Positions 20,304 to 58,773 of a stretch of 64,000 nt of DNA are shown in pieces (position 1 is the first letter of the stretch; every line of letters starts with the position of its first letter). The notes below the pieces were generated by a model. That model made no database searches. It was not told where the DNA came from and saw nothing but the letters and a program-made list of their open reading frames with translations. The stretch comes from Octopus sinensis (taxonomy: Eukaryota). The stretch covers positions 3,100,001-3,164,000 of the forward strand of contig NC_043019.1 of the NCBI RefSeq assembly GCF_006345805.1. Reading direction: 5' to 3'. Position numbers and translations under genes: made by a program.

Positions 20304-20348
<45 letters not shown>

Positions 20349-23300: not shown

Positions 23301-26300
23301 TAGTGTATCTTACAGCTGTGATCTCACTATATTTGCAAGGTCGTCGAGGTCACAGCATATATACATACATATAAATATATACATATATATATATATTTAC
23401 ACATGTATATATACATATATATATATATATACATATATATACATATTTACACATGTATATATACATATATATATATATACATATATATACATATATCTAC
23501 AAATATACATATACATATATATATACATATATAAACACATATATATATACGAATACAAATACATATATATATATACATATATATATACATATACAAATAC
23601 ATATATATATATACATATACAAATACATATATATATACATATACAAATACATATATATACACATATTTCTATATACATATACATACATATATATATATAT
23701 ACATATATATATGCATATACATATTTATATATATACATACACATACACATATATATGTACATAAACATACATATATATGCAAACACAAATGTATATATAT
23801 CTATATATAAATATATATGTATATTATATATAAACATATATATATATACATACTGAGAATACATATATATATATACATATCAAGTGTATGAGAGGGATAA
23901 GATGGATGTCAGCATATACGTTTAATAAAATAGAATAAAGAGTTTGCATCTGTGTACAAAATCTACACACATGAACAATACACTTTACTGCACATTACTA
24001 TCTTCTCTGAATAGTGAGAATCACTGCTTGTAATAATTCTCTGAATGAAAACATATGGAAAATCTATACAACAATTCACACCTACTATCTTTATGTAGAA
24101 AGTAAATCCTTACTGGTTGTACATTGGCTATTAAAATCTTTGCTACACATTGATATCAAACGTGATGAGAATAAGATGGATGTCAGCATATACGTTTACT
24201 AAAAGGCAATAAAGGCTTTCTTAATGTCTCACCACCTCTCTTTGTCGTCATCTCAATTATAGGTGGCTGTCTAGTAGGTTCTGGTTGCCCTCCTTCCAAG
24301 GAAAAATAATCACAAAACTTAGTAATACTCCCATACATATCTATATTGAATGCAAGTGTAATGCTCTCTCACACTCCAACTATCAAGCACACACCTGTAC
24401 ATGAGTTTATCTATCTGACAATGAATCACTCACCCCACATTTGCACGTAAATAGAAGCATACTTATCTAGACGTAAATACACGTAAAAAAATGCATTTCA
24501 GCATATTGGAAAACATATGTATGTACATGCACATGTACATATATCTATACAGATATACGCCAATATACTGACAAGATATATACACATGTGAGTAAATGCA
24601 TACCTACACTGCAAATTATATATATATCTAGCTAGCCATTCATATATATATATGGATGTATGTATCTTTGTATTCATGTATAAACGTAGAGAAAACATAT
24701 ATGTTACAGGATAGTTATACAACAAATTGCCTATATAGGAAATAATGCATTAGGCCACACTTTCTCAGACTACATGCGTTGTCAGATTGACTTAAGCTTT
24801 TCACAAAAACATAAACTATGTACGAAATACACATCTCTTGAAAGTAGAGTAGGTTCTTGAAAATAACGCAATACAATATTCATTATCTCAAATTATATGA
24901 ATGAAATGTTAGAGTCTTTTCAAAACTATACAAGGAATATTATATGTTGAAAAGAAGAAATTGGTAAGATTTCAGTCGTTAAGTTTAATCAACGTCATTG
25001 GTGGTGGTAACAAATATAATTTCAAAGTATATAAATTAAGTTAGGAGCTGGTACATATCAACTTAAACGCTTATAATTAGTAAACGTATTATTGTAGACC
25101 ATTGCAAGTGGATTTTCTATAATATCCTGAAGTTCTACAAGCTTTCATCCAGTAATCAATGTTACATTCGACAACACAATTATAAACATTAGAAAAATTA
25201 TTGTAATTATGTCAAGTGTAGTTAAAATATATTAGGAAGGGCAATATGATTTAGATGTAGTAAAACATGAACTGTATATCACATTTGAAAGAAATAAGAA
25301 TATTGAGGAAGGAGAAGCAAATACCAACAGCATTAGTACATTAACAGCATTATTTTCATAAAGACACAAAGAAATGTTGTTTATCTAGTAACATATGGGT
25401 ATATTAGTAAGAGAGATTCGGAAGGAAACTTCCTACTCGATTATCACCATTTATAAAACATGTTATTTACTTATTCATAATTACTTCCACTTAACACAGC
25501 AATATCAAACATACAATCTTTCCATTAAGGGTGTGAGTCGTTGGAAATGAAGATAGACAACAGAAGGCAAAAAAGGTATGTTGCGTAAAACAATTCACAT
25601 TACGAGAGATTGTTAGCGTCGTTAGAAACGTCAATGGTAAATACTTGCACAAAACGTTAACTAAAGCTCAGACTTGAAAGTAACACAGTAGGAGATGGTG
25701 TTAAATATATCTTTGTAGAATAGCTGAGATTATATCATTGATTAGTAATGCTTTACAATACAACTTCGTTTTGTAATCACATGCTAATTGCTATACCTGG
25801 GCAATATTGCTCAAATATTCTTTCTTTCAGATTCGACAGTTCGTTGAAATCAGTCACAATAAACATGTTTTCGTCAACAGGTAATGAGGAAATCTGGCTC
25901 AATTCTGTAGTGTCACTGAGACCAATACCAATAGCATATATGTGGATGCCATCCTCTCTCACTTTCTTTGCTTCTGGAATAGTGTCGTAAGCATTGACGT
26001 TCGATACGCCGTCGGTGAGCAGAATGGCAATATTGGGAACGGACGGCCTGTCACCATTCTCTGTCGTGAACATTACTGTCCGCATGGTGTTAAGCCCGCC
26101 GTAAGTGTTTGTACTGCCGTAAACATATGGAATTTGGAGGACTGCATCGATTACTTCTTGCTTTGTTTGGAAAGCATTCAAATGGAATTGGATTTTCACG
26201 TCTGAACTGTAAAGGACTGCACCGATTCGAACATTGCCATTGTCAATGGAAGCAGCAGACACAAAATCAACAATGAAATTTAGCATTTTCTTGAAGTTTT

Positions 26301-29300
26301 CTTCTTGGACACTAGTTGATGAGTCCAAAATGAAGATGATGTCAGATTCTGTAGCACCACAATCACCTGGAAACATTAGGATAACTTATCACCTATCCAG
26401 TAATACACGGCCAACACATATATCTACAATACTATTTCAAAACTATTTCAATGACGCAAAGTTACAATTTACACTACATGCACTTATGCACAAAAACAGT
26501 TCCGAAAATACAAACATCTGAAAACTCACAAAACAAAACAAGATATTTCATAACAACTACCTCAAAACTGGTTCACAACAGAGTATCAACAATTGAAGAC
26601 GAAACATGACTGGAACTATTAGAACAACAACAAACAAATGTTATCACATACACTTCAACCGAAACGATGTCGAATCCTGCAGCGACAGTGTTGCATGGAA
26701 AATCGCGTTCCATATTGACAAAAGAAAACAAAAGAACACTCAAAGAAATTGAAAGAAATTGCAGGCATTCAACATCTAACATTCACTGGAACAAGCATCC
26801 GAACATTCGTTTGAAATTTCCATATTAGACAACTTGCGAAAACACTGAACGAGAAATACAAAACTCACATATATAGCAAAGACAATTGTCTAAAAATCAA
26901 TACACATATAGACAAAAGCACTGAGTTTCTCTGATAACCAACATAATTCTCGGCAATAACAATAACCTATAACATGTAAACATGTACGCCCACCAACAAC
27001 ATGAACACATACAAATCTACAACACTCTATTAACAAAGAATATGTTGAGCAGTACAAGAGCCTTACCCTTTGTTGGTAATGTAATGGCAGGTGCTGGAGT
27101 TTTCTCCGCAACTGCGAGAAATAAGATTAACATTTACTGTTCCATGTACAAACATCTGTTGTCAAGTCTTCTTTCTACACACACACACACAAACAATACA
27201 CTTTACTCCACATTACTATCTTCTCTCAATGAATAGTGAGAATCACTGCTTGTAATAATTCTCTGAATGAAAACATATGGAAAATCTATACAACAATTCA
27301 CACCTACTATCTTTATGTAGAAAGTAAATCCTTACTGGTTGTACATTGGCTATTAAAATCTTTGCTACACATTGATATCAAACGTGATGAGAATAAGATG
27401 GATGTCAGCATATACGTTTACTAAAAGGCAATAAAGGCTTTCTTAATGTCTCACCTCTCTTTGTCGTCATCTCAATTATAGGTGGCTGTCTAGTAGGTTC
27501 TGGTTGCCCTCCTTCCAAGGAAAAATAATCACAAAACTTAGTAATACTCCCATATATATCTATATTGAATGCAAGTGTAATGCTCTCTCACACTCCAACT
27601 ATCAAGCACACACCTGTACATGAGTTTATCTATCTGACAATGAATCACTCACCCCACATTTGCACGTAAATAGAAGCATACTTATCTAGACGTAAATACA
27701 CGTAAAAAAATGCACTTCAGCATATTGGAAAACATATGTATGCACATGCACATGTACATATATCTATACAGATATACGCCAATATACTGACAAGATATGT
27801 ACACATGTGAGTACATGCATACCAACACTGCAAATTATATATATATCTAGCTAGCCATTCATATATATATATGGATGTATGTATCTTTGTATTCATGTAT
27901 AAACGTAGAGAAAACATATATATTACACGATAGGTATACAACAAGTTGCCTGTATAGGAAATAATGCATTACGCCACACTTTCTCAGACTACATGCGTTG
28001 TCAGATTGAATTAAGCTTTTCACAAATACATAAACTATGTACGAAATACACATCTCTTGAAAGTAGAGTAGGTTCTTGAAAATAACGCAATACAATATTC
28101 ATTATCTCAAATTATATGAATGAAATGTTAGAGTCTTTTCAAAACTATACAAGGAATATTATATGTTAGATAAGAAGAAATTGGTAAGATTTCAGTCGTT
28201 AAGTTTAATCATTAGAAAATCATTGTAATTATGTCAAGTGTAGTTAAAATATATTAGGAAGGGCAATATGATTTAGATGTAGTAAAAATATGAACTGTAT
28301 ATCACATTTGAAAGAAATAAGAATATTGAGGAAGGAGAAGCAAATACCAACAGCATTAGTACATTAACAGCATTATTTTCATAAAGACACAAAGAAATGT
28401 TGTTTATCTAGTAACATATGGGTATATTAGTAAGAGAGATTCGGAAGGAAACTTCCTACTCGATTATCACCATTTATAAAACATGTTATTTACTTATTCA
28501 TAATTACTTCCACTTAACACAGCAATATCAAACATACAATCTCTCCATTAAGGGTGTGAGTCGTTGGAAATGAAGATAGACAACAGAAGGCAACGAAAGG
28601 TATGTTGCGTAAAACAATTCACATTACGAGAGATTGTTAGCGTCGTTAGAAACGTCAATGGTAAATACTTGCACAAAACGTTAACTAAAGCTCAGACTTG
28701 AAAGTAACACAGTAGGAGATGGTGTTAAATATATCTTTGTAGAATAGCTGAGATTATATCATTGATTAGTAATGCTTTACAATACAACTTCGTTTTGTAA
28801 TCACATGCTAATTGCTATACCTGGGCAATATTGCTCAAATATTCTTTCTTTCAGATTCGACAGTTCGTTGAAGTCAGTCACAATAAACATGTTTTCGTCA
28901 ACAGGTAATGAGGAAATCTGGCTCAATTCTGTAGTGTCACTGAGACCAATACCAATAGCATATATGTGGATGCCATCCTCTCTCACTTTCTTTGCTTCTG
29001 GAATAGTGTCGTAAGCATTGACGTTCGATACGCCGTCGGTGAGCAGAATGGCAATATTGGGAACGGACGGCCTGTCACCATTCTCTGTCGTGAACATTAC
29101 TGTCCGCATGGTGTTAAGCCCGCCGTAAGTGTTTGTACTGCCGTAAACATATGGAATTTGGAGGACTGCATCGATTACTTCTTGCTTTGTTTGGAAAGCA
29201 TTCAAATGGAATTGGATTTTCACGTCTGAACTGTAAAGGACTGCACCGATTCGAACATTGCCATTGTCAATGGAAGCAGCAGACACAAAATCAACAATGA

Positions 29301-32300
29301 AATTTAGCATTTTCTTGAAGTTTTCTTCTTGGACACTAGTTGATGAGTCCAAAATGAAGATGATGTCAGATTCTGTAGCACCACAATCACCTGGAGAACA
29401 TTAGGATAACTTATCACCTATCCAGTAATACACGGCCAACACATATATCTACAATACTATTTCAAAACTTTTTCAATGACGCAAAGTTACAATTTTACAC
29501 TACATGTACTTATGCACAAAAACAGTTCCGAAAATACAAACATCTGAAAACTCACAAAACAAAACAAGATATTTCATCACAACTACCTCAAAACTGGTTC
29601 ACAACAGAGTATCAACAATTGAAGACGAAACATGACAGGAACTACAGAACAACAACAAACAAATGTTATCACATACACTTTAACCGAAACGATGTCGACA
29701 CATGCAGCGACAGTGTTGCATGGAAAATCGCGTTCCATATTGACAAAAGAAAACAAAAGAACACTCAATTATATACGAAGAAATTGCAGGCATTCAACAT
29801 CTAACATTCACTGGAACAAGCATCCGAACATTCGTTTCAAATTTCCATATTAGACAACTTGCGAAAACACTGAACGAGAAATACAAAACTCACATATATA
29901 GCAAAGACAAATGTCTAAAAATCAATACACATATAGACAAAAGCACTGAGTTTCTCTGATAACCAACATAATTCTCATCAATAACAATACCCTATAACAT
30001 GTAAACGTGTACGCCCACCAACAACATGAACACATACAAATCTACAACACTCTATTAACAAAGAATATGTTGAGCAGTACGAGAGCCTTACCCTTTGTTG
30101 GTAATGTAATGGCAGGTGCGGAGTTTTCTCCACAACTGCGAGAAATAAATTAACATTTACTGTTCCATGTACAAACATCTGTTGTCAAGTCTTCTTTCTA
30201 CACACACACACAAACAATACACTTTACTCCACATTACTATCTTCTCTCAATGAATAGTGAGAATCACTGCTTGTAATAATTCTCTGAATGAAAACATATG
30301 GAAAATCTATACAACAATTCACACCTACTATCTTTATGTAGAAAGTAAATCCTTACTGGTTGTACATTGGCTATTAAAATCTTTGCTACACATTGATATC
30401 AAACGTGATGAGAATAAGATGGATGTCAGCATATACGTTTACTAAAAGGCAATAAAGGCTTTCTTAATGTCTCACCTCTCTTTGTCGTCATCTCAATTAT
30501 AGGTGGCTGTCTAGTAGGTTCTGGTTGCCCTCCTTCCAAGGAAAAATAATCACAAAACTTAGTAATACTCCCATATATATCTATATTGAATGCAAGTGTA
30601 ATGCTCTCTCACACTCCAACTATCAAGCACACACCTGTACATGAGTTTATCTATCTGACAATGAATCACTCACCCCACATTTGCACGTAAATAGAAGCAT
30701 ACTTATCTAGACGTAAATACACGTAAAAAAATGCACTTCAGCATATTGGAAAACATATGTATGCACATGCACATATATCTATACAGATATACGCCAATAT
30801 ACTGACAAGATATGTACACATGTGAGTACATGCATACCAACACTGCAAATTATATATATATCTAGCTAGCCATTCATATATATATATGGATGTATGTATC
30901 TTTGTATTCATGTATAAACGTAGAGAAAACATATATATTACACGATAGGTATACAACAAGTTGCCTGTATAGGAAATAATGCATTACGCCACACTTTCTC
31001 AGACTACATGCGTTGTCAGATTGAATTAAGCTTTTCACAAATACATAAACTATGTACGAAATACACATCTCTTGAAAGTAGAGTAGGTTCTTGAAAATAA
31101 CGCAATACAATATTCATTATCTCAAATTATATGAATGAAATGTTAGAGTCTTTTCAAAACTATACAAGGAATATTATATGTTAGATAAGAAGAAATTGGT
31201 AAGATTTCAGTCGTTAAGTTTAATCATTAGAAAAATCATTGTAATTATGTCAAGTGTAGTTAAAATATATTAGGAAGGGCAATAGGATTTAGATGTAGTA
31301 AAAATATGAACTGTATATCACATTTGAAAGAAATAAGAATATTGAGGAAGGAGAAGCAAATACCAACAGCATTAGTACATTAACAGCATTATTTTCATAA
31401 AGACACAAAGAAATGTTGTTTATCTAGTAACATATGGGTATATTAGTAAGAGAGATTCGGAAGGAAACTTCCTACTCGATTATCACCATTTATAAAACAT
31501 GTTATTTACTTATTCATAATTACTTCCACTTAACACAGCAATATCAAACATACAATCTCTCCATTAAGGGTGTGAGTCGTTGGAAATGAAGATAGACAAC
31601 AGAAGGCAACGAAAGGTATGTTGCGAAAAACAATTCACATTACGAGAGATTGTTAGCGTCGTTAGAAACGTCAATGGTAAATACTTGCACAAAACGTTAA
31701 CTAAAGCTCAGACTTGAAAGTAACACAGTAGGAGATGGTGTTAAATATATCTTTGTAGAATAGCTGAGATTATATCATTGATTAGTAATGCTTTACAATA
31801 CAACTTCGTTTTGTAATCACATGCTAATTGCTATACCTGGGCAATATTGCTCAAATATTTTTTCTTTCAGATTCGACAGTTCGTTGAAGTCAGTCACAAT
31901 AAACATGTTTTCGTCAACAGGTAATGAGGAAATCTGGCTCAATTCTGTAGTGTCACTGAGACCAATACCAATAGCATATATGTGGATGCCATCCTCTCTC
32001 ACTTTCTTTGCTTCTGGAATAGTGTCGTAAGCATTGACGTTCGATACGCCGTCGGTGAGCAGAATGGCAATATTGGGAACGGACGGCCTGTCACCATTCT
32101 CTGTCGTGAACATTACTGTCCGCATGGTGTTAAGCCCGCCGTAAGTGTTTGTACTGCCGTAAACATATGGAATTTGGAGGACTGCATCGATTACTTCTTG
32201 CTTTGTTTGGAAAGCATTCAAATGGAATTGGATTTTCACGTCTGAACTGTAAAGGACTGCACCGATTCGAACATTGCCATTGTCAATGGAAGCAGCAGAC

Positions 32301-35300
32301 ACAAAATCAACAATGAAATTTAGCATTTTCTTGAAGTTTTCTTCTTGGACACTAGTTGATGAGTCCAAAATGAAGATGATGTCAGATTCTGTAGCACCAC
32401 AATCACCTGGAGAACATTAGGATAACTTATCACCTATCCAGTAATACACGGCCAACACATATATCTACAATACTATTTCAAAACTTTTTCAATGACGCAA
32501 AGTTACAATTTTACACTACATGTACTTATGCACAAAAACAGTTCCGAAAATACAAACATCTGAAAACTCACAAAACAAAACAAGATATTTCATCACAACT
32601 ACCTCAAAACTGGTTCACAACAGAGTATCAACAATTGAAGACGAAACATGACAGGAACTACCAGAACAACAACAAACAAATGTTATCACATACACTTTAA
32701 CCGAAACGATGTCGACACATGCAGCGACAGTGTTGCATGGAAAATCGCGTTCCATATTGACAAAAGAAAACAAAAGAACACTCAATTATATACGAAGAAA
32801 TTGCAGGCATTCAACATCTAACATTCACTGGAAGAAGCATCCGAACATTCGTTTCAAATTTCCATATTAGACAACTTGCGAAAACACTGAACGAGAAATA
32901 CAAAACTCACATATATAGCAAAGACAATTGTCTAAAAATCAATACACATATAGACAAAAGCACTGAGTTTCTCTGATAACCAACATAATTCTCGGCAATA
33001 ACAATACCCTATAACATGTAAACGTGTACGCCCACCAACAACATGAACACATACAAATCTACAACACTCTATTAACAAAGAATATGTTGAGCAGTACGAG
33101 AGCCTTACCCTTTGTTGGTAATGTAATGGCAGGTGCTGGAGTTTTCTCCACAACTGCGAGAAATAAAATTAACATTTACTGTTCCATGTACAAACATCTG
33201 TTGTCAAGTCTTCTTTCTACACACACACACAAACAATACACTTTACTCCACATTACTATCTTCTCTCAATGAATAGTGAGAATCACTGCTTGTAATAATT
33301 CTCTGAATGAAAACATATGGAAAATCTATACAACAATTCACACCTACTATCTTTATGTAGAAAGTAAATCCTTACTGGTTGTACATTGGCTATTAAAATC
33401 TTTGCTACACATTGATATCAAACGTGATGAGAATAAGATGGATGTCAGCATATACGTTTACTAAAAGGCAATAAAGGCTTTCTTAATGTCTCACCTCTCT
33501 TTGTCGTCATCTCAATTATAGGTGGCTGTCTAGTAGGTTCTGGTTGCCCTCCTTCCAAGGAAAAATAATCACAAAACTTAGTAATACTCCCATATATATC
33601 TATATTGAATGCAAGTGTAATGCTCTCTCACACTCCAACTATCAAGCACACACCTGTACATGAGTTTATCTATCTGACAATGAATCACTCACCCCACATT
33701 TGCACGTAAATAGAAGCATACTTATCTAGACGTAAATACACGTAAAAAATGCATTTCAGCATATTGGAAAACATATGTATGCACATGCACATATATCTAT
33801 ACAGATATACGCCAATATACTGACAAGATATATACACATGTGAGTACATGCATACCAACACTGCAAATTATATATATATCTAGCTAGCCATTCATATATA
33901 TATATGGATGTATGTATCTTTGTATTCATGTATAAACGTAGAGAAAACATATATATTACACGATAGGTATACAACAAGTTGCCTGTATAGGAAATAATGC
34001 ATTACGCCACACTTTCTCAGACTACATGCGTTGTCAGATTGAATTAAGCTTTTCACAAATACATAAACTATGTACGAAATACACATCTCTTGAAAGTAGA
34101 GTAGGTTCTTGAAAATAACGCAATACAATATTCATTATGTCAAATTATATGAATGAAATGTTAGAGTCTTTTCAAAACTATACAAGGAATATTATATGTT
34201 AGATAAGAAGAAATTGGTAAGATTTCAGTCGTTAAGTTTAATCATTAGAAAAATCATTGCAATTATGTCAAGTGTAGTTAAAATATATTAGGAAGGGCAA
34301 TAGGATTTAGATGTAGTAAAAATATGAACTGTATATCACATTTGAAAGAAATAAGAATATTGAGGAAGGAGAAGCAAATACCAACAGCATTAGTACATTA
34401 ACAGCATTATTTTCATAAAGACACAAAGAAATGTTGTTTATCTAGTAACATATGGGTATATTAGTAAGAGAGATTCGGAAGGAAACTTCCTACTCGATTA
34501 TCACCATTTATAAAACATGTTATTTACTTATTCATAATTACTTCCACTTAACACAGCAATATCAAACATACAATCTCTCCATTAAGGGTGTGAGTCGTTG
34601 GAAATGAAGATAGACAACAGAAGGCAACGAAAGGTATGTTGCGAAAAACAATTCACATTACGAGAGATTGTTAGCGTCGTTAGAAACGTCAATGGTAAAT
34701 ACTTGCACAAAACGTTAACTAAAGCTCAGACTTGAAAGTAACACAGTAGGAGATGGTGTTAAATATATCTTTGTAGAATAGCTGAGATTATATCATTGAT
34801 TAGTAATGCTTTACAATACAACTTCGTTTTGTAATCACATGCTAATTGCTATACCTGGGCAATATTGCTCAAATATTTTTTCTTTCAGATTCGACAGTTC
34901 GTTGAAGTCAGTCACAATAAACATGTTTTCGTCAACAGGTAATGAGGAAATCTGGCTCAATTCTGTAGTGTCACTGAGACCAATACCAATAGCATATATG
35001 TGGATGCCATCCTCTCTCACTTTCTTTGCTTCTGGAATAGTGTCGTAAGCATTGACGTTCGATACGCCGTCGGTGAGCAGAATGGCAATATTGGGAACGG
35101 ACGGCCTGTCACCATTCTCTGTCGTGAACATTACTGTCCGCATGGTGTTAAGCCCGCCGTAAGTGTTTGTACTGCCGTAAACATATGGAATTTGGAGGAC
35201 TGCATCGATTACTTCTTGCTTTGTTTGGAAAGCATTCAAATGGAATTGGATTTTCACGTCTGAACTGTAAAGGACTGCACCGATTCGAACATTGCCATTG

Positions 35301-38300: not shown

Positions 38301-41300
38301 TGGCAATATTGGGAACGGACGGCCTGTCACCATTCTCTGTCGTGAACATTACTGTCCGCATGGTGTTAAGCCCGCCGTAAGTGTTTGTACTGCCGTAAAC
38401 ATATGGAATTTGGAGGACTGCATCGATTACTTCTTGCTTTGTTTGGAAAGCATTCAAATGGAATTGGATTTTCACGTCTGAACTGTAAAGGACTGCACCG
38501 ATTCGAACATTGCCATTGTCAATGGAAGCAGCAGACACAAAATCAACAATGAAATTTAGCATTTTCTTGAAGTTTTCTTCTTGGACACTAGTTGATGAGT
38601 CCAAAATGAAGATGATGTCAGATTCTGTAGCACCACAATCACCTGGAGAACATTAGGATAACTTATCACCTATCCAGTAATACACGGCCAACACATATAT
38701 CTACAATACTATTTCAAAACTTTTTCAATGACGCAAAGTTACAATTTTACACTACATGTACTTATGCACAAAAACAGTTCCGAAAATACAAACATCTGAA
38801 AACTCACAAAACAAAACAAGATATTTCATCACAACTACCTCAAAACTGGTTCACAACAGAGTATCAACAATTGAAGACGAAACATGACAGGAACTATCAG
38901 AACAACAACAAACAAATGTTATCACATACACTTTAACCGAAACGATGTCGAATCCTGCAGCGACAGTGTTGCATGGAAAATCGCGTTCCATATTGACAAA
39001 AGAAAACAAAAGAACACTCAATTATATACAAAGAAATTGCAGGCATTCAACATCTAACATTCACTGGAACAAGCATCCGAACATTCGTTTCAAATTTCCA
39101 TATTAGACAACTTGCGAAAACACTGAACGAGAAATACAAAACTCACATATATAGCAAAGACAAATGTCTAAAAATCAATACACATATAGACAAAAGCACT
39201 GAGTTTCTCTGATAACCAACATAATTCTCGGCAATAACAATAACCTATAACATGTAAACGTGTACGCCCACCAACAACATGAACACATACAAATCTACAA
39301 CACTCTATTAACAAAGAATATGTTGAGCAGTACGAGAGCCTTACCCTTTGTTGGTAATGTAATGGCAGGTGCGGAGTTTTCTCCACAACTGCGAGAAAAA
39401 ATTAACATTTACTGTTCCATGTACAAACATCTGTTGTCAAGTCTTCTTTCTACACACACACACACACACAAACAATACACTTTACTCCACATTACTATCT
39501 TCTCTCAATGAATAGTGAGAATCACTGCTTGTAATAATTCTCTGAATGAAAACATATGGAAAATCTATACAACAATTCACACCTACTATCTTTATGTAGA
39601 AAGTAAATCCTTACTGGTTGTACATTGGCTATTAAAATCTTTGCTACACATTGATATCAAACGTGATGAGAATAAGATGGATGTCAGCATATACGTTTAC
39701 TAAAAGGCAATAAAGGGTTTCTTAATGTCTCACCTCTCTTTGTCGTCATCTCAATTATAGGTGGCTGTCTAGTAGGTTCTGGTTGCCCTCCTTCCAAGGA
39801 AAAATAATCACAAAACTTAGTAATACTCCCATATATATCTATATTGAATGCAAGTGTAATGCTCTCTCACACTCCAACTATCAAGCACACACCTGTACAT
39901 GAGTTTATCTATCTGACAATGAATCATCACCCCACATTTGCACGTAAATAGAAGCATACTTATCTAGACGTAAATACACGTAAAAAAATGCATTTCAGCA
40001 TATTGGAAAACATATGTATGCACATGCACATGTACATATATCTATACAGATATACGCCAATATACTGACAAGATATGTACACATGTGAGTACATGCATAC
40101 CAACACTGCAAATTATATATATATCTAGCTAGCCATTCATATATATATATGGATGTATGTATCTTTGTATTCATGTATAAACGTAGAGAAAACATATATA
40201 TTACACGATAGGTATACAACAAGTTGCCTGTATAGGAAATAATGCATTACGCCACACTTTCTCAGACTACATGCGTTGTCAGATTGAATTAAGCTTTTCA
40301 CAAATACATAAACTATGTACGAAATACACATCTCTTGAAAGTAGAGTAGGTTCTTGAAATAACGCAATACAATATTCATTATCTCAAATTATATGAATGA
40401 AATGTTAGAGTCTTTTCAAAACTATACAAGGAATATTATATGTTAGATAAGAAGAAATTGGTAAGATTTCAGTCGTTAAGTTTAATCATTAGAAAAATCA
40501 TTGTAATTATGTCAAGTGTAGTTAAAATATATTAGGAAGGGCAATATGATTTAGATGTAGTAAAAATATGAACTGTATATCACATTTGAAAGAAATAAGA
40601 ATATTGAGGAAGGAGAAGCAAATACCAACAGCATTAGTACATTAACAGCATTATTTTCATAAAGACACAAAGAAATGTTGTTTATCTAGTAACATATGGG
40701 TATATTAGTAAGAGAGATTCGGAAGGAAACTTCCTACTCGATTATCACCATTTATAAAACATGTTATTTACTTATTCATAATTACTTCCACTTAACACAG
40801 CAATATCAAACATACAATCTTTCCATTAAGGGTGTGAGTCGTTGGAAATGAAGATAGACAACAGAAGGCAACAAAAGGTATGTTGCGTAAAACAATTCAC
40901 ATTACGAGAGATTGTTAGCGTCGTTAGAAACGTCAATGGTAAATACTTGCACAAAACGTTAACTAAAGCTCAGACTTGAAAGTAACACAGTAGGAGATGG
41001 TGTTAAATATATCTTTGTAGAATAGCTGAGATTATATCATTGATTAGTAATGCTTTACAATACAACTTCGTTTTGTAATCACATGCTAATTGCTATACCT
41101 GGGCAATATTGCTCAAATATTCTTTCTTTCAGATTCGACAGTTCGTTGAAGTCAGTCACAATAAACATGTTTTCGTCAACAGGTAATGAGGAAATCTGGC
41201 TCAATTCTGTAGTGTCACTGAGACCAATACCAATAGCATATATGTGGATGCCATCCTCTCTCACTTTCTTTGCTTCTGGAATAGTGTCGTAAGCATTGAC

Positions 41301-44300
41301 GTTCGATACGCCGTCGGTGAGCAGAATGGCAATATTGGGAACGGACGGCCTGTCACCATTCTCTGTGTCGTGAACATTACTGTCCGCATGGTGTTAAGCC
41401 CGCCGTAAGTGTTTGTACTGCCGTAAACATATGGAATTTGGAGGACTGCATCGATTACTTCTTGCTTTGTTTGGAAAGCATTCAAATGGAATTGGATTTT
41501 CACGTCTGAACTGTAAAGGACTGCACCGATTCGAACATTGCCATTGTCAATGGAAGCAGCAGACACAAAATCAACAATGAAATTTAGCATTTTCTTGAAG
41601 TTTTCTTCTTGGACACTAGTTGATGAGTCCAAAATGAAGATGATGTCAGATTCTGTAGCACCACAATCACCTGGAGAACATTAGGATAACTTATCACCTA
41701 TCCAGTAATACACGGCCAACACATATATCTACAATACTATTTCAAAACTTTTTCAATGACGCAAAGTTACAATTTTACACTACATGTACTTATGCACAAA
41801 AACAGTTCCGAAAATACAAACATCTGAAAACTCACAAAACAAAACAAGATATTTCATCACAACTACCTCAAAACTGGTTCACAACAGAGTATCAACAATT
41901 GAAGACGAAACATGACAGGAACTACCAGAACAACAACAAACAAATGTTATCACATACACTTTAACCGAAACGATGTCGACACATGCAGCGACAGTGTTGC
42001 ATGGAAAATCGCGTTCCATATTGACAAAAGAAAACAAAAGAACACTCAATTATATACGAAGAAATTGCAGGCATTCAACATCTAACATTCACTGGAACAA
42101 GCATCCGAACATTCGTTTCAAATTTCCATATTAGACAACTTGCGAAAACACTGAACGAGAAATACAAAACTCACATATATAGCAAAGACAAATGTCTAAA
42201 AATCAATACACATATAGACAAAAGCACTGAGTTTCTCTGATAACCAACATAATTCTCATCAATAACAATACCCTATAACATGTAAACGTGTACGCCCACC
42301 AACAACATGAACACATACAAATCTACAACACTCTATTAACAAAGAATATGTTGAGCAGTACGAGAGCCTTACCCTTTGTTGGTAATGTAATGGCAGGTGC
42401 TGGAGTTTTCTCCACAACTGCGAGAAATAAAATTAACATTTACTGTTCCATGTACAAACATCTGTTGTCAAGTCTTCTTTCTACACACACACACAAACAA
42501 TACACTTTACTCCACATTACTATCTTCTCTCAATGAATAGTGAGAATCACTGCTTGTAATAATTCTCTGAATGAAAACATATGGAAAATCTATACAACAA
42601 TTCACACCTACTATCTTTATGTAGAAAGTAAATCCTTACTGGTTGTACATTGGCTATTAAAATCTTTGCTACACATTGATATCAAACGTGATGAGAATAA
42701 GATGGATGTCAGCATATACGTTTACTAAAAGGCAATAAAGGCTTTCTTAATGTCTCACCTCTCTTTGTCGTCATCTCAATTATAGGTGGCTGTCTAGTAG
42801 GTTCTGGTTGCCCTCCTTCCAAGGAAAAATAATCACAAAACTTAGTAATACTCCCATATATATCTATATTGAATGCAAGTGTAATGCTCTCTCACACTCC
42901 AACTATCAAGCACACACCTGTACATGAGTTTATCTATCTGACAATGAATCACTCACCCCACATTTGCACGTAAATAGAAGCATACTTATCTAGACGTAAA
43001 TACACGTAAAAAATGCATTTCAACATATTGGAAAACATATGTATGCACATGCACATGTACATATCTATACAGATATACGCCAATATACTGACAAGATATG
43101 TACACATGTGAGTACATGCATACCAACACTGCAAATTATATATATATCTAGCTAGCCATTCATATATATATGGATGTATGTATCTTTGTATTCATGTATA
43201 AACGTAGAGAAAACATATATATTACACGATAGGTATACAACAAGTTGCCTGTATAGGAAATAATGCATTACGCCACACTTTCTCAGACTACATGCGTTGT
43301 CAGATTGAATTAAGCTTTTCACAAATACATAAACTATGTACGAAATACACATCTCTTGAAAGTAGAGTAGGTTCTTGAAAATAACGCAATACAATATTCA
43401 TTATCTCAAATTATATGAATGAAATGTTAGAGTCTTTTCAAAACTATACAAGGAATATTATATGTTAGATAAGAAGAAATTGGTAAGATTTCAGTCGTTA
43501 AGTTTAATCATTAGAAAAATCATTGTAATTATGTCAAGTGTAGTTAAAATATATTAGGAAGGGCAATATGATTAGATGTAGTAAAAATATGAACTGTATA
43601 TCACATTTGAAAGAAATAAGAATATTGAGGAAGGAGAAGCAAATACCAACAGCATTAGTACATTAACAGCATTATTTTCATAAAGACACAAAGAAATGTT
43701 GTTTATCTAGTAACATATGGGTATATTAGTAAGAGAGATTCGGAAGGAAACTTCCTACTCGATTATCACCATTTATAAAACATGTTATTTACTTATTCAT
43801 AATTACTTCCACTTAACACAGCAATATCAAACATACAATCTCTCTCCATTAAGGGTGTGAGTCGTTGGAAATGAAGATAGACAACAGAAGGCAACGAAAG
43901 GTATGTTGCGTAAAACAATTCACATTACGAGAGATTGTTAGCGTCGTTAGAAACGTCAATGGTAAATACTTGCACAAAACGTTAACTAAAGCTCAGACTT
44001 GAAAGTAACACAGTAGGAGATGGTGTTAAATATATCTTTGTAGAATAGCTGAGATTATATCATTGATTAGTAATGCTTTACAATACAACTTCGTTTTGTA
44101 ATCACATGCTAATTGCTATACCTGGGCAATATTGCTCAAATATTCTTTCTTTCAGATTCGACAGTTCGTTGAAGTCAGTCACAATAAACATGTTTTCGTC
44201 AACAGGTAATGAGGAAATCTGGCTCAATTCTGTAGTGTCACTGAGACCAATACCAATAGCATATATGTGGATGCCATCCTCTCTCACTTTCTTTGCTTCT

Positions 44301-47300
44301 GGAATAGTGTCGTAAGCATTGACGTTCGATACGCCGTCGGTGAGCAGAATGGCAATATTGGGAACGGACGGCCTGTCACCATTCTCTGTCGTGAACATTA
44401 CTGTCCGCATGGTGTTAAGCCCGCCGTAAGTGTTTGTACTGCCGTAACATATGGAATTTGGAGGACTGCATCGATTACTTCTTGCTTTGTTTGGAAAGCA
44501 TTCAAATGGAATTGGATTTTCACGTCTGAACTGTAAAACTGCACCGATTCGAACATTGCCATTGTCAATGGAAGCAGCAGACACAAAATCAACAATGAAA
44601 TTTAGCATTTTCTTGAAGTTTTCTTCTTGGACACTAGTTGATGAGTCCAAAATGAAGATGATGTCAGATTCTGTAGCACCACAATCACCTGGAGAACATT
44701 AGGATAACTTATCACCTATCCAGTAATACACGGCCAACACATATATCTACAATACTATTTCAAAACTTTTTCAATGACGCAAAGTTACAATTTACACTAC
44801 ATGTACTTATGCACAAAAACAGTTCCGAAAATACAAACATCTGAAAACTCACAAAACAAAACAAGATATTTCATCACAACTACCTCAAAACTGGTTCACA
44901 ACAAGTATCAACAATTGAAGACGAAACATGACAGGAACTATCAGAACAACAACAAACAAATGTTATCACATACACTTTAACCGAAACGATGTCGACACAT
45001 GCAGCGACAGTGTTGCATGGAAAATCGCGTTCCATATTGACAAAAGAAAACAAAAGAACACTCAATTATATACAAAGAAATTGCAGGCATTCAACATCTA
45101 ACATTCACTGGAACAAGCATCCGAACATTCGTTTGAAATTTCCATATTAGACAACTTGCGAAAACACTGAACGAGAAATACAAAACTCACATATATAGCA
45201 AAGACAAATGTCTAAAAATCAATACACATATAGACAAAAGCACTGAGTTTCTCTGATAACCAACATAATTCTCGGCAATAACAATAACCTATAACATGTA
45301 AACGTGTACGCCCACCAACAACATGAACACATACAAATCTACAACACTCTATTAACAAAGAATATGTTGAGCAGTACGAGAGCCTTACCCTTTGTTGGTA
45401 ATGTAATGGCAGGTGCCGGAGTTTTCTCCACAACTGCGAGAAACAAAATTAACATTTACTGTTCCATGTACAAACATCTGTTGTCAAGTCTTCTTTCTAC
45501 ACACACACACAAACAATACACTTTACTCCACATTACTATCTTCTCTCAATGAATAGTGAGAATCACTGCTTGTAATAATTCTCTGAATGAAAACATATGG
45601 AAAATCTATACAACAATTCACACCTACTATCTTTATGTAGAAAGTAATCCTTACTGGTGTACATTGGCTATTAAAATCTTTGCTACACATTGATATCAAA
45701 CGTGATGAGAATAAGATGGATGTCAGCATATACGTTTACTAAAAGGCAATAAAGGCTTTCTTAATGTCTCACCTCTCTTTTCGTCATCTCAATTATAGGT
45801 GGCTGTCTAGTAGGTTCTGGTTGCCCTCCTTCCAAGGAAAAATAATCACAAAACTTAGTAATACTCTCCCATATATATCTATATTGAATGCAAGTGTAAT
45901 GCTCTCTCACACTCCAACTATCAAGCACACACCTGTACATGAGTTTATCTATCTGACAATGAATCACTCACCCCACATTTGCACGTAAATAGAAGCATAC
46001 TTATCTAGACGTAAATACACGTAAAAAATGCATTTCAGCATATTGGAAAACATATGTATGCACATGCACATATATCTATACAGATATACGCCACTATACT
46101 GACAAGATATATACACATGTGAGTACATGCATACCTACACTGCAAATTATATATATATCTAGCTAGCTATTCATATATATATATGGATGTATGTATCTTT
46201 GTATTCATGTATAAATGTAGAGAAAACATATATGTTACACGATTGGTATACAACAAGTTGCCTGTATAGGAAATAATGCATTACGCCACACTTTCTCAGA
46301 CTACATGCGTTGTCAGATTGAATTAAGCTTTTCACAAATACATAAACTATGTACGAAATACACATCTCTTGAAAGTAGAGTAGGTTCTTGAAAATAACGC
46401 AATACAATATTCATTATCTCAAATTATATGAATGAAATGTTAGAGTCTTTTCAAAACTATACAAGGAAAATATTATATGTTAAGTAACAAGAAGTGGTAA
46501 GATTTCAGATTCGTTCAGTTTAATCATTAGAAAAATCATTGTAATTATGTCAAGTGTAGTTAAAATATATTAGGAAGGGCAATATGATTTAGATGTAGTA
46601 AAAATATGAACTGTATATCACATTTGAAAGAAATAAGAATATTGAGGAAGGAGAAGCAAATACCACAGCATTAGTACATTAACAGCATTATTTTCATAAA
46701 GACACAAGAAATGTTGTTTATCTAGTAACATATGGGTATATTAGTAAGAGAGATTCGGAAGGAAACTTCCTACTCGATTATCACCATTTATAAAACATGT
46801 TATTTACTTATTCATAATTACTTCCACTTAACACAGCAATATCAACATACAATCTTTCCATTAAGGGTGTGAGTCGTTGGAAATGAAGATAGACAACAGA
46901 AGGCAACAAAAGGTATGTTGCGAAAACAATTCACATTACGAGAGATTGTTAGCGTCGTTAGAAACGTCAATGGTAAATACTTGCACAAAACGTTAACTAA
47001 AGCTCAGACTTGAAAGTAACACAGTAGGAGATGGTGTTAAATATATCTTTGTAGAATAGCTGAGATTATATCATTGATTAGTAATGCTTTACAATACAAC
47101 TTCGTTTTGTAATCACATGCTAATTGCTATACCTGGGCAATATTGCTCAAATATTTTTTCTTTCTTTCAGATTCGACAGTTCGTTGAAGTCAGTCACAAT
47201 AAACATGTTTTCGTCAACAGGTAATGAGGAATCTGGCTCAATTCTGTAGTGTCACTGAGACCAATACCAATAGCATATATGTGGATGCCATCCTCTCTCA

Positions 47301-50268
47301 CTTTCTTTGCTTCTGGAATAGTGTCGTAAGCATTGACGTTCGATACGCCGTCGGTGAGCAGAATGGCAATATTGGGAAGGACGGCCTGTCACCATTCTCT
47401 GTCGTGAACATTACTGTCCGCATGGTGTTAAGCCCGCCGTAAGTGTTTGTACTGCCGTAAACATATGGAATTTGGAGGACTGCATCGATTACTTCTTGCT
47501 TTGTTTGGAAAGCATTCAAATGGAATTGGATTTTCACGTCTGAACTGTAAAGGACTGCACCGATTCGAACATTGCCATTGTCAATGGAAGCAGCAGACAC
47601 AAAATCAACAATGAAATTTAGCATTTTCTTGAAGTTTTCTTCTTGGACACTAGTTGATGAGTCCAAAATGAAGATGATGTCAGATTCTGTAGCACCACAA
47701 TCACCTGGAGAACATTAGGATAACTTATCACCTATCCAGTAATACACGGCCAACACATATATCTACAATACTATTTCAAACTTTTTCAATGACGCAAAGT
47801 TACAATTTTACACTACATGTACTTATGCACAAAAACAGTTCCGAAATACAAACATCTGAAAACTCACAAAAACAAAACAAGATATTTCATCACAACTACC
47901 TCAAAACTGGTTCACAACAGAGTATCAACAATTGAAGACGAAACATGACAGGAACTATCAGAACAACACAAACAAATGTTATCACATACACTTTAACCGA
48001 AACGATGTCGAATCCTGCAGCGACAGTGTTGCATGGAAAATCGCGTTCCATATTGACAAAAGAAAACAAAAGAACACTCAATTATATACGAAGAAATTGC
48101 AGGCATTCAACATCTAACATTCACTGGAACAAGCATCCGAACATTCGTTTCAAATTTCCATATTAGACAACTTGCGAAAACACTGAACGAGAAATACAAA
48201 ACTCACATATATAGCAAAGACAAATGTCTAAAATCAATACACATATAGACAAAAGCACTGAGTTTCTCTGATAACCAACATAATTCTCGGCAATAACAAT
48301 AACCTATAACATGTAAACGTGTACGCCCACCAACAACATGAACACATACAAATCTACAACACTCTATTAACAAAGAATATGTTGAGCAGTACGAGAGCCT
48401 TACCCTTTGTTGGTAATGTAATGGCAGGTGCCGGAGTTTTCTCCACAACTGCGAGAAACAAAATTAACATTTACTGTTCCATGTACGAACATCTGTTGTC
48501 AAGTCTTCTTTCTACACACACACACACACACAAACAATACACTTTACTCCACGTTACTATCTTCTCTCAATGAATAGTGAGAATCACTGCTTGTAATAAT
48601 TCTCTGAATGAAAACATATGGAAAATCTATACAACAATTCACACCTACTATCTTTATGTAGAAAGTAAATCCTTACTGGTTGTACATTGGCTATTAAAAT
48701 CTTTGCTACACATTGATATCAAACGTGATGAGAATAGATGGATGTCAGCATATACGTTTACTAAAAGGCAATAAAGGCTTTCTTAATGTCTCACCTCTCT
48801 TTGTCGTCATCTCAATTATAGGTGGCTGTCTAGTAGGTTCTGGTTGCCCTCCTTCCAAGGAAAAATAATCACAAAACTTAGTAATACTCCCATATATATC
48901 TATATTGAATGCAAGTGTAATGCTCTCTCACACTCCAACTATCAAGCACACACCTGTACATGAGTTTATCTATCTGACAATGAATCACTCACCCCACATT
49001 TGCACGTAAATAGAAGCATACTTATCTAGACGTAAATACACGTAAAAATGCATTTCAGCATATAAAACATATGTATGCACATGCACATGTACATATATCT
49101 ATACAGATATACGCCAATATACTGACAAGATATATACACATGTGAGTAAATGCGTACCTACACTAGAACTTATATATATATCTAGCTAGCCATTCATATA
49201 TATATATATGGATGTATGTATCTTTGTATTCATGTATAAATGTAGAGAAAACATATATCTTACACGATTGGTATACAACAAGTTGCCTGTATAGGAAATA
49301 ATGCATTACGCCAGACTTTCTCAGACTAGATGCGTTGTCAGATTGAATTAAGCTTTTCACAAATACATAAACTATGTACGAAATACACATCTCTTGAAAG
49401 TAGAGTAGGTTCTTGAAAATAACGCAATACAATATTCATTATCTCAAATTATATGAATGAAATGTTAGAGTCTTTTCAAACTATACAAGGAATATTATAT
49501 GTTAGATAAGAAGAAATGTGGTAAGATTTCAGTCGTTAAGTTAAACATTAGAAAAAATCAATTGTAATTATTCAAGTGTAGTGAAAATATATAGAAGGGC
49601 AATTATGATGATTAGATTAGTAAATATGAACTGTATATCACATTTGAAAGAAATAAGAATATTGAGGAAGGAGAAGCAAATACCAACAGCATTAGTACAT
49701 TAACAGCATTATTTTTCATAAAGACACAAAGAAGGTTGTTTATCTAGTAACATATGGGTATATTAGTAAGAGAGATTCGGAAGGAAACTTCCTACTCGAT
49801 TATCACCATTTATAAACATTTATTTACTTATTCATAATTACTTACTTCCACTTACACAGCAATATCAAACATACAATCTCTCCATTAGGGTGGTGAGTCG
49901 TTGGAAATGAAGATAGACAACAGAAGGCAACGAAAGGTATGTTGCGAAAAACAATTCACATTACGAGAGATTGTTAGCGTCGTTAGAAACGTCAATGGTA
50001 ATACTTGCACAAAACGTTAACTGAAGCTCAGACTTGAAAGTAACACAGTAGGATGGTGTTAAATATATCTTTGTAGAATAGCTGAGATTATCATTGATTA
50101 GTAATGCTTTACAATACAACTTCGTTTTGTAATCACATGCTAATTGCTATACCTGGGCAATATTGCTCAAATATTTTTTTCTTTCAGATTCGACAGTTCG
50201 TTGAAGTCAGTCACATAAACATGTTTTCGTCAACAGGTAATGAGGAATATCTGGCTCAATTCTGTAGT
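12083..50268 (-). CDS. Spliced gene (partial; 5' end lost in or beyond the gap) encoding a giant tandem-vWA protein with Pro/Thr linkers and a Pro/Thr-rich C-terminal stalk; collagen VI/matrilin-like vWA domains, no collagen helix seen
   Basis: Exon chain in transcription order: [vWA exon, 45-nt linker exon] repeated, then vWA 25797-26366, 20876-20893, 18798-18857, 12083-12163. All have AG/GT boundaries and phase 1-1. The joined reading is ...[41 protein letters not shown]... and finally ...[56 protein letters not shown]. Confidence 0.85.
13690..14345 (-). mobile_element. Mariner transposase remnant (N-terminal half)
   Basis: Minus-strand [16 protein letters not shown] and [43 protein letters not shown] resemble the mariner HTH and WVP(K/H)LL region; frameshifted. 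Confidence 0.6.
14390..14619 (-). mobile_element. SINE family B
   Basis: Reverse complement of 10487-10673, beginning with catcatcat. Confidence 0.85.
14879..15496 (-). mobile_element. SINE family A carrying an internal insertion that includes a hairpin
   Basis: Tail half at 14879-15120 and head half at 15355-15496, separated by extra sequence inside the TA tract. Confidence 0.8.
15219..15311. repeat. 93-bp near-perfect palindrome
   Basis: 44-bp arms (tatatagagggcattactatacataaatgccacaatctaggact) with 2 mismatches and a 5-nt loop ttaag. Confidence 0.9.
15740..16045 (+). mobile_element. RTE-clade LINE 3' coding fragment
   Basis: [23 protein letters not shown]...[14 protein letters not shown]...EEMTKD resembles the RTE RRLRWxGHV C-terminal region. 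Confidence 0.65.
16330..16560 (+). mobile_element. SINE family B
   Basis: Matches 10440-10673 and ends in gatgatgatg. Confidence 0.85.
17085..17272 (+). mobile_element. SINE family B, diverged
   Basis: tggttggcattagaaaggacattcagctgtagaaac...gcatggaaaatagctattaaatgatgatga. Confidence 0.7.
18798..18857 (-). CDS. 60-nt Pro/Thr exon ([20 protein letters not shown])
   Basis: Acceptor ...ctcatattttcaacag, donor G|gtaagatatt, phase 1-1, open. Confidence 0.8.
19816..20301. mobile_element. Intronic foldback element with ~200-bp inverted arms
   Basis: 19816-20017 versus the reverse complement of 20100-20301 is colinear, roughly 85% identical by eye, with an ~82-bp spacer. Confidence 0.8.
20876..20893 (-). 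CDS. 18-nt microexon (GRPIPT)
   Basis: Long polypyrimidine acceptor ttccttttttttatttttttccatag, exon GACGACCAATACCTACAG, donor gtaagatattc; phase 1-1 and in frame with its neighbours. Confidence 0.7.
21060..21600 (+). mobile_element. RTE-clade reverse transcriptase fragment, degenerate
   Basis: [21 protein letters not shown] (GVHQGSVLSP-like), [16 protein letters not shown] and [12 protein letters not shown]. Confidence 0.6.
21654..21728. repeat. Hairpin made of two inverted SINE-A-like 3' ends
   Basis: 33-bp arms tttcagtcattggactgtggccatgctgggaca; the 3 mismatches are all G-T type; 9-nt loop. Confidence 0.8.
22349..22652. repeat. Pair of ~70-bp diverged direct repeats
   Basis: tattatcgattt...caatctaagtatgtca(c/t)gaggtttccagacat(g/a)agttct at ~22349-22420 and ~22581-22652. 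Confidence 0.6.
22839..23160 (-). mobile_element. SINE family B, diverged, with repeated 5' units
   Basis: catcatcatc...ccatgctggcatgggttgga...gctggatgcccttcctaatgc. Confidence 0.8.
23360..23880. repeat. Complex (TA)/(TACA)/(TACAAA) microsatellite
   Basis: Low-complexity tract that explains the YI/IY ORFs in the track. Confidence 0.95.
25797..26366 (-). CDS. vWA exon, copy 1 (most 3'), intact 570 nt
   Basis: [20 protein letters not shown]...GSTNT...ILLTDG...IYAIGIG...EQYCP, with MIDAS D-x-S-x-S, T and D. Acceptor gtttccag, donor gtatag. Confidence 0.93.
27067..27111 (-). CDS. 45-nt linker exon ([15 protein letters not shown])
   Basis: Acceptor ttatttctcgcag, donor gtaaggc, phase 1-1. Confidence 0.85.
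28821..29390 (-). CDS. vWA exon copy 2, intact 570 nt
   Basis: As copy 1; acceptor gttctccag. Confidence 0.92.
30092..30135 (-). CDS. Linker exon copy, 44 nt (1-bp deletion, probably a consensus error)
   Basis: gtgcggag here versus gtgccggag or gtgctggag in the intact copies. Confidence 0.7.
31837..32406 (-). CDS. vWA exon copy 3, intact 570 nt
   Basis: As copy 1; KEKIF variant. Confidence 0.92.
33109..33153 (-). CDS. Linker exon, 45 nt ([15 protein letters not shown])
   Basis: Same splice sites; intact. Confidence 0.85.
34855..35424 (-). CDS. vWA exon copy 4, intact 570 nt
   Basis: As copy 3 (KEKIF). Confidence 0.92.
36126..36170 (-). CDS. Linker exon, 45 nt
   Basis: Same splice sites; intact. 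Confidence 0.85.
38074..38642 (-). CDS. vWA exon copy 5, 569 nt (1-bp deletion)
   Basis: catttttcgt here versus catgttttcgt at ~38141, shifting the frame near the exon 3' end. Confidence 0.8.
39345..39388 (-). CDS. Linker exon copy, 44 nt (same 1-bp loss as 30092-30135)
   Basis: gtgcggag. Confidence 0.7.
41099..41670 (-). CDS. vWA exon copy 6, 572 nt (2-bp insertion)
   Basis: ctctgtgtcgtg here versus ctctgtcgtg at ~41361. Confidence 0.8.
42373..42417 (-). CDS. Linker exon, 45 nt
   Basis: Intact. Confidence 0.85.
44122..44688 (-). CDS. vWA exon copy 7, 567 nt (2-bp and 1-bp deletions, net in frame)
   Basis: ctgtaaaactgc versus ctgtaaaggactgc, and ccgtaacat versus ccgtaaacat. Confidence 0.8.
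45389..45433 (-). CDS. Linker exon, 45 nt
   Basis: Intact. Confidence 0.85.
47133..47704 (-). CDS. vWA exon copy 8, 572 nt (indels of +4, -1 and -1)
   Basis: Extra tttc, gaggaatct and gggaaggac relative to the other copies. Confidence 0.78.
48404..48448 (-). CDS. Linker exon, 45 nt
   Basis: Intact. Confidence 0.85.
50153..50268 (-). CDS. vWA exon copy 9, 3' part only (cut by the gap)
   Basis: Matches the last ~116 nt of the exon, with several small indels. Confidence 0.75.
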
Positions 50269-50368
50269 NNNNNNNNNNNNNNNNNNNNNNNNNNNNNNNN
50301 NNNNNNNNNNNNNNNNNNNNNNNNNNNNNNNNNNNNNNNNNNNNNNNNNNNNNNNNNNNNNNNNNNNN
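50269..50368. other. Assembly gap (100 N, placeholder length)
   Basis: Run of exactly 100 N; the sequence to the right is unrelated to the array. Confidence 0.99.

Positions 50369-58724: not shown

Positions 58725-58773
<49 letters not shown>

Follow-up and report, generated by a model that had tools for sequence, protein, structure and literature searches.

A homogenised exon-cassette array, probably part of a giant multi-vWA gene, in Octopus sinensis

Tandem vWA domains are known from several extracellular proteins. The N-terminal array of collagen VI alpha3 and the mussel byssal protein PTMP1 are both extracellular, bind collagen or matrix and are built of such domains; mammalian COL6A3 has ten of them at its N-terminus, all diverged from each other, and PTMP1 has just two. 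In the matrilins, vWA is accompanied by EGF and a C-terminal coiled coil, and in collagen alpha-1(XIV), a FACIT collagen, by FN3, TSPN and COL/NC. A different route to a long repetitive protein is seen in human LPA, where the kringle IV-2 (KIV-2) cassette, a few kb long and made of several exons, is repeated head to tail in near-identical, frame-preserving copies; the length of the protein follows the copy number, and polymorphism of this number is documented. The shell-matrix proteins Pif/BMSP carry vWA along with chitin-binding (CBM14) and laminin-G modules (PMC11291548). Here, a stretch of 64,000 nucleotides from Octopus sinensis is described (RefSeq assembly GCF_006345805.1, contig NC_043019.1, positions 3,100,001 to 3,164,000 of the forward strand), which is called the window below and which contains a tandem array of vWA-coding cassettes. 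We consider it likely that this array is a homogenised exon-cassette block of a giant, secreted multi-vWA gene, and that most of the insertions and deletions (indels) in it are technical.

On comparison of the window with itself by BLAST, a head-to-tail array was found at 23965-50268 on the minus strand, with long diagonals of 97-99% identity at offsets that are multiples of ~3.02 kb. Self-BLAST was used because Tandem Repeats Finder has a period limit of 500, which makes a 3-kb period invisible to it. When a unit is taken to run from one vWA exon start to the next, there are eight of them, U1 to U8, each of 3016-3028 bp except U5 (3218 bp) and U1 (2402 bp), and a 727-bp piece of a ninth unit abuts an assembly gap. 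The extra length of U5 comes from an additional segment of 192 bp. The presence of this segment in both U1 and U5, together with a 13.3-kb diagonal at an offset of 12,275, shows a higher-order duplication of four units (12.3 kb). The array and its landmarks are as follows.

23965-50268, minus strand: tandem three-exon cassettes, from U1 (3'-most, truncated) to U8, with a partial U9 at the gap (self-BLAST)
24992-25183, second copy at 37267-37458, no strand given: 192-bp intronic segment, in U1 and U5 only (self-comparison)
50269-50368, no strand: 100-N assembly gap that cuts the ninth unit; the sequence past it has no unit match (self-comparison)

The array of about nine units in the octopus is a genuine tandem repeat. 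The ~3-kb cassettes of the original prediction are seen in the self-comparison, and its figure of at least nine copies is a statement about the assembly, not a measured number, since the array ends in a gap. All the coding signal, by six-frame open reading frames (ORFs) and by tblastn of the window, is on the minus strand, and in this respect the first description of the gene is corrected.

Each unit contains three exons, of 570, 57 and 45 nt, all of phase 1-1. The vWA exon, 570 nt long when intact, is flanked by the acceptor tccag/GT and the donor CCAG/gtatag (a slash marks the splice point) and is present in eight complete copies. The 45-nt linker exon (cgcag/TTG..AAGG/gtaagg), also in eight copies, is rich in proline and threonine (P/T-rich) and encodes [16 protein letters not shown]. 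The 57-nt exon (ggaag/GAGGG...AGAGAG/gtgaga) encodes [19 protein letters not shown] and has nine copies, one in each of the eight units and a further one in the truncated 3' unit (24292-24236). Its length of 57 nt follows from a canonical AG acceptor, and the decapodiform counterpart described below has an AG at the equal relative place. Only the vWA and linker exons had been predicted; their lengths and phases hold good, and the third exon had been overlooked. As all the exons are of phase 1-1, any number of units, with the mini-exons in or out, splices in frame.

25797-26366, minus strand: vWA exon of U1, 570 nt, intact (ORFs, tblastn, splice sites)
28821-29390, minus strand: vWA exon of U2, 570 nt, intact (ORFs, tblastn, splice sites)
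31837-32406, minus strand: vWA exon of U3, 570 nt, intact, KEKIF variant
34855-35424, minus strand: vWA exon of U4, 570 nt, intact, KEKIF variant
38074-38642, minus strand: vWA exon of U5, 569 nt; a 1-bp deletion shifts the frame near the 3' end
41099-41670, minus strand: vWA exon of U6, 572 nt; a 2-bp 'AC' insertion shifts the frame
44122-44688, minus strand: vWA exon of U7, 567 nt; 2-bp and 1-bp deletions put ~30 codons out of frame
47133-47704, minus strand: vWA exon of U8, 572 nt; two 1-bp deletions and a 4-bp insertion
50153-50268, minus strand: vWA exon of U9, only its 3' 116 nt, indel-ridden and cut by the gap
27067-27111, 33109-33153, 36126-36170, 42373-42417, 45389-45433 and 48404-48448, minus strand: 45-nt linker exons, intact
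30092-30135 and 39345-39388, minus strand: 44-nt linker exons, with a 1-bp deletion
24236-24292, 27455-27511, 30476-30532, 33495-33551, 36512-36568, 39734-39790, 42759-42815 and 48795-48851, minus strand: 57-nt exons
45773-45828, minus strand: copy of the 57-nt exon reduced to 56 nt by a 1-bp deletion

By Pfam, the long exon encodes a VWA domain (PF00092; E = 6.5e-46, 157 bits against a cut-off of 23.8, profile positions 1-173 of 174), which bears out the domain identity first proposed. The residues of the metal-ion-dependent adhesion site (MIDAS), D14, S16, S18, T85/T87 and D118 (DxSxS...T...D), are invariant or nearly so among 23 relatives, and the Cys at both ends of the domain is conserved in relatives as well. 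An AlphaFold model (predicted local distance difference test score, pLDDT, 92) has a Rossmann-like alpha/beta fold with the MIDAS residues and gives template-modelling (TM) scores of 0.89-0.91 to collagen VI alpha3 N2 and mussel PTMP1. By homology, the octopus domains would be MIDAS-competent and would bind ligand in a metal-dependent manner.

The collagen VI alpha3 array and PTMP1 are also the best solved-structure matches to the octopus domain (31-32% identity, MIDAS-type fold). Collagen VI chains have a collagenous Gly-X-Y triple helix with vWA domains on either side of it; no Gly-X-Y exon, Kunitz or FN3 was recognised in the 64-kb window, beyond which the annotated gene runs. With collagen XIV and the FACIT group, the octopus gene has vWA in common, and FN3, TSPN and COL/NC are missing both from the octopus models, which contain VWA and VWA_2 only, and from the window. 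An identity with collagen XIV was set aside as these FACIT hallmarks are missing; the RefSeq name 'collagen XIV-like' reflects similarity in the vWA domain and nothing else. As regards the matrilins, no EGF exon was found in the window flanks by tblastn with an abalone relative, the 3' part of the gene lying outside the window. A chitin-binding exon of the Pif/BMSP kind was not noticed in the window either, where no dedicated search for it was run. In its construction, the array resembles LPA KIV-2, with a head-to-tail multi-exon cassette, symmetric phases and near-identical copies, though the domain family is unrelated. By analogy with LPA, it is plausible that the length of the octopus protein would be set by the copy number of the array.

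The same architecture is present in another cephalopod. The ENA contig ERZ21867824:ctg99157l (35607-64433) holds at least eight tandem units; the name decapodiform was given to it solely on the grounds that its vWA matches a protein of Acanthosepion pharaonis at 90% identity over 109 aa. With the octopus domain, the decapodiform vWA shares 73-77% identity; it is encoded by 570-nt exons of phase 1-1 with AG/GT sites, in units of 2.5-2.9 kb that are 96-99% identical and include a 36-nt P/T linker exon. Six copies of its vWA exon are 0-1 nt apart (five are identical), and two others are 1 nt apart from each other and 98 nt from the first type; no exon on this contig is broken. Between the octopus and decapodiform DNA, the vWA exon alone aligns (71%), and the introns are unalignable. 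It was also observed that the decapodiform units of 2.82-2.88 kb carry both mini-exons and those of 2.51-2.56 kb are without the 57-nt counterpart, and that a divergent vWA exon (61-65% to octopus, apparently interrupted) is located 5.8 kb upstream of that array.

Further, an exhaustive HMMER search returned many giant multi-vWA proteins. The closest, at 52-56% identity, are Sinanodonta woodiana KAL3854705.1 (8 domains), Haliotis rufescens XP_048237149.1 (8) and Argopecten irradians XP_069108493.1 (6). In the abalone and unionid relatives, a signal peptide and P/T linkers accompany the near-identical vWA domains. The abalone protein has 'QFATTPLPPK' spacers and 34 identical EGF units, and KAL3854705.1 has T/P-rich spacers and an SRCR domain. 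The molluscan multi-vWA proteins (Haliotis LOC124110407, Sinanodonta 'COL6A' and the Argopecten collagen alpha-4(VI)-like protein) have the terminal Cys and short P/T-rich spacers in common with the octopus; all are uncharacterised predictions whose orthology with the octopus gene is unestablished. They differ from the octopus window in that the abalone has EGF units and a divergent C-terminal vWA, Sinanodonta has SRCR, and the Argopecten copies are diverged. In XP_048237149.1, the 34 EGF units of 41 aa are perfectly identical beside the identical vWA domains, so that a second domain type is homogenised in the same gene.

The vWA domains of one protein are 100% identical to each other in the abalone (seven domains) and 98-100% in a pipefish col6a3-like protein; in Sinanodonta the median identity is 94%, and in Argopecten the range is 45-67%. 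As other molluscs and fish also have arrays of this sort, the octopus array is not a new kind of thing. That tandem vWA domains normally diverge strongly from each other, the premise on which the interest of the array was first argued, fails as a general rule; as near-identical tandem domains recur, the argument from rarity is weakened.

Within the octopus array, segregating substitutions occupy 3 of 671 exon sites as against 68 of 2337 intron sites (p = 4e-5). The ratio of nonsynonymous to synonymous divergence (dN/dS) is 0.24 between a window exon and an exon of VCDQ01009686.1, an unplaced octopus scaffold. Against the decapodiform exon, dN is 0.16-0.17, synonymous sites are saturated or nearly so, and dN/dS is below 0.07. 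These ratios, along with the depletion of substitutions in exons, indicate that the exons are constrained coding sequence. The edge unit U1 is the most divergent of the array, as expected where arrays are homogenised. Homogenisation, as originally proposed, is supported by the decapodiform contig, as the same cassette is 0-1 nt apart there within the species and has only 73% protein identity to the octopus. Because several long-split lineages each have such within-species identity, homogenisation that is still going on is a more parsimonious reading than recent bursts in all of them at once, the orthology of the loci being unestablished. The mechanism would be unequal crossing-over or gene conversion. 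Between the octopus sub-arrays, that is, the window and VCDQ01009686.1, exon dS is 0.08 as against an intron divergence of ~23% (introns ~77% identical), and among the decapodiform units of the first type (type A), 0 of 570 exon sites vary as against 99 of 1928 intron sites. The exons are thus even more uniform than constraint on amino acids predicts, and conversion may be centred on them.

The annotation of the locus gives evidence that the units belong together. The window corresponds to GCA_006345805.1 CM016881.1, with a 100% match in reverse orientation over the 12,971 bp of overlap compared. XP_029650176.1, which bears the name 'collagen alpha-1(XIV) chain-like isoform X1' in Octopus sinensis, has the same sequence as the frameshift-truncated reading of U8. 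RefSeq has fragments of 155 and 140 aa in unit 8, where XP_029650176.1 and XP_036368327.1 join exons; these NCBI models begin at an internal Met of the 57-nt exon and end at the assembly frameshift. An annotated product of 4,624 residues starts at about window position 44410, inside the vWA exon of U7, and runs to lower coordinates; eight VWA/VWA_2 Pfam matches and 38 more entries are listed for it, which puts its VWA-type Pfam hits at more than 40. From ~44410 to the end of the array there are just seven vWA exons, and the next 24 kb have no family exon, so this model must extend into vWA cassettes beyond the window.

A related sub-array with the same three exons is present on the scaffold VCDQ01009686.1. 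Its units are 94% identical among themselves, and its exons are ~97% identical to those of the window as against ~77% for the introns. The model XP_029654099.2 from this scaffold splices the 57-nt exon between the vWA exon and the linker. This model (9740-9860) also reads 'CPEGGQ...' over the junction of vWA and mini-exon, which corresponds to a 60-nt exon with a non-canonical TTGG/ acceptor; a canonical AG three bases downstream in VCDQ01009686.1 would read 'CPGGQ...'. The proposal that the units are exons of one large multi-vWA gene is supported by the phase 1-1 boundaries, the canonical splice sites and the NCBI models that join them, while the exon inventory and the intactness that came with it are not.

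Frame-breaking indels are present in four of the eight vWA exons, two linkers and one 57-nt exon, giving seven breaks. The substitutions predicted between copies (KERIF/KEKIF, a GAT/GAC change and A/V in the linker) are present in the exon alignment; that the copies differ by substitutions alone is contradicted by the indels in seven exons. The 25 exons joined come to 5,430 nt, and their longest open stretches are 535, 453 and 379 aa. The protein of at least 1,640 aa that had been predicted is, therefore, not realised in the assembled sequence and needs the seven breaks to be treated as errors.

Several observations favour a technical origin for most of the indels. Between units, substitutions per site are six times rarer in exons (0.17%) than in introns (1.00%), whereas indels are about equal (0.32% and 0.46%). 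Among private events, the ratio of indels to substitutions is 8:2 in exons as against 22:48 in introns (Fisher p = 0.005). U3 and U4 have no private indels and U8 has 14-15, and the last 727 bp before the gap have about 30 indel columns. The private indels are mostly 1-bp changes in short homopolymers and become denser with proximity to the gap. PacBio reads and Hi-C are the basis of the assembly, to go by the title of Li et al. 2020 as cited in PMC11202624. As the indel density rises towards the gap and indels, unlike substitutions, are not depleted in exons, most indels can be read as PacBio consensus errors; the frame-breaking ones of units 5-9 are, for the most part, probably long-read consensus errors adjoining the gap.

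The alternative that fares best takes the same indels as real. The array would then be partly dead, with pseudo-exons in its distal half (U5-U9), and either the functional gene would begin downstream or the block would be decaying. All four distal vWA exons are indeed broken and all four proximal ones intact, U5 has an exon indel without any private intronic indel, and the deletion present in two linkers looks inherited and not random. The NCBI pipeline, too, took the breaks as real and split its models, the 4,624-aa one starting in unit 7. We nevertheless regard this alternative as unlikely. The roughly six-fold depletion of substitutions in exons extends to the distal units, with no private exon substitution in U5-U8; the indel density climbs steadily towards the gap, with 1-bp changes in short homopolymers dominating; and the homologous decapodiform array has no broken exon.

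It can also be asked whether the array is an artefact of assembly, over-expanded from one to a few real units or produced by mis-joined haplotypes. The array abuts a gap, and related units occur on an unplaced scaffold. The divergence from unit to unit is 0.2-2%, which is within the range of heterozygosity expected for an octopus. However, the units carry structured variants, such as the 192-bp segment in U1 and U5, linker haplotypes common to particular units and clear sub-groups in the divergence matrix, and these are unlike duplicate consensus copies. Further, an independent assembly of another cephalopod has at least eight tandem units, and some 22 vWA domains are required for the annotated octopus product. 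Where a gap falls within an array, it is more often a sign of collapse than of expansion. An artefact of this kind is, on balance, very improbable. Duplication of haplotigs was likewise set aside as unlikely, the pattern being a continuous tandem shift with structured unit variants and not two blocks flanking the gap. Finally, that each unit is an independent single-domain vWA gene in a tandem family, as the short RefSeq models (155 and 140 aa) confined to unit 8 might suggest, can be rejected with hardly any doubt, since these models run from an internal Met to an assembly frameshift, none of the units comes with a signal peptide or terminal exon of its own, and all exons are of phase 1-1 with AG/GT sites, with paralogous and heterologous models that splice vWA to mini-exons to vWA.

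In the explanation favoured here, the block would be the 5'-most assembled part of a very large minus-strand gene. The product would be a secreted 'beads-on-a-string' protein, in which vWA domains of the collagen-VI/PTMP1 type are joined by short proline/threonine-rich spacers. Every unit of ~3 kb would supply one set of the symmetric 570-, 57- and 45-nt exons, and gene conversion or unequal crossing-over would keep the units near-identical, with purifying selection acting on the protein. Transcription as a single gene, secretion and a matrix or adhesive role are inferred from these features and from the relatives; going by homology, the protein would function as a matrix, mucus or adhesive polymer.

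Certain points weigh against this explanation. The copy number is taken from a PacBio assembly with a gap in it. Within the 64-kb window, neither a signal peptide nor a first or last exon was found, and there was no family exon in its 24-kb 3' flank or its 13.6-kb 5' flank by tblastn with the unit and nine relatives, in which vWA, EGF and SRCR were sought. The 4,624-aa product is known from its annotation listing, and it was met neither in word-indexed protein searches nor in an exhaustive HMMER search. A junction-spanning protein search returned only the two known fragments, so that support from transcripts is indirect. Nor are all the indels of one kind. The linkers at 30135-30092 and 39388-39345 have an identical 1-bp deletion together with common flanking variants, and this deletion is, therefore, probably a genuine variant that was inherited and duplicated. 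Some exon indels of U5-U7, which lie in units with few intronic indels, may also be real. The frame is kept only if a 44-nt linker is skipped, and one of the isoforms given by NCBI lacks the linker; the shared deletion looks as though it would be tolerated through exon skipping.

In the literature on cephalopod vWA, octopus collagen/von Willebrand and octopus proteomes, no description of the gene was found. An octopus skin-mucus proteome lists unspecified 'VWFA domain-containing' and 'cartilage matrix' proteins (PMC11431876), and the UniProt accessions of the octopus vWA locus are absent from the supplements of that paper.

Outside the array, the window flanks hold only low-complexity ORFs, and the flank ORFs gave no Pfam match. 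A dispersed repeat of 230-420 bp resembles a short interspersed nuclear element (SINE) or a miniature inverted-repeat transposable element (MITE), its copies being 82-92% identical; no tRNA-like head was found in it by ARAGORN. The other features noted in the window are these.

9237-9645, plus strand, and 58567-58989, minus strand: copies of the dispersed repeat
305-522, 7811-8022 and 14869-15099: partial copies of the dispersed repeat, which is also found in an intron of VCDQ01009686.1 (5575-5980)
4540-5275, plus strand: two adjacent or overlapping ORFs of 134 and 123 aa, of ordinary composition and without a Pfam match; they may be a decayed mobile-element gene
10148-10558, minus strand, and 14428-14904, plus strand: ORFs with the common motif LDALPN.NHS.SVVGAF, which suggests another dispersed element
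10291-10504: GC-rich 62-bp tandem repeat, 3.4 copies
19812-20305: long imperfect palindrome of 494 bp, 81% identical to its own reverse complement
23357-23880 (85 bp from the 3' edge) and 51.3-53.4 kb: large AT/ATAC/GT microsatellite blocks, close by the array on either side
61141-62180: long (AAT)n microsatellite interleaved with a 253-bp unit, 2.2 copies, 95% identity

Considered across the molluscs (octopus, decapodiform, abalone and unionid mussel), an extracellular vWA lineage might be kept as arrays of identical domains by ongoing exon-focused conversion or unequal crossing-over, with a copy number that is polymorphic within populations and tunes the length, and through it the mechanics, of a matrix, mucus or adhesive polymer. 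This wider proposal is tentative, and we hold it to be doubtful at present.

The octopus locus leaves the current understanding of vWA proteins unchanged. It is an example of assembly and annotation alike being defeated by an array of repeats, with a single gene split into models of 140, 155 and 4,624 aa, with a gap and probable consensus frameshifts. The identical MIDAS-bearing domains could interest biomaterials work. Concerted evolution of an exon cassette can also be seen cleanly here, and in parallel in two lineages of cephalopods as well as in further molluscs. Polymorphism in the length of the protein could matter functionally, should the protein prove abundant in a matrix, mucus, cartilage or adhesive of cephalopods.

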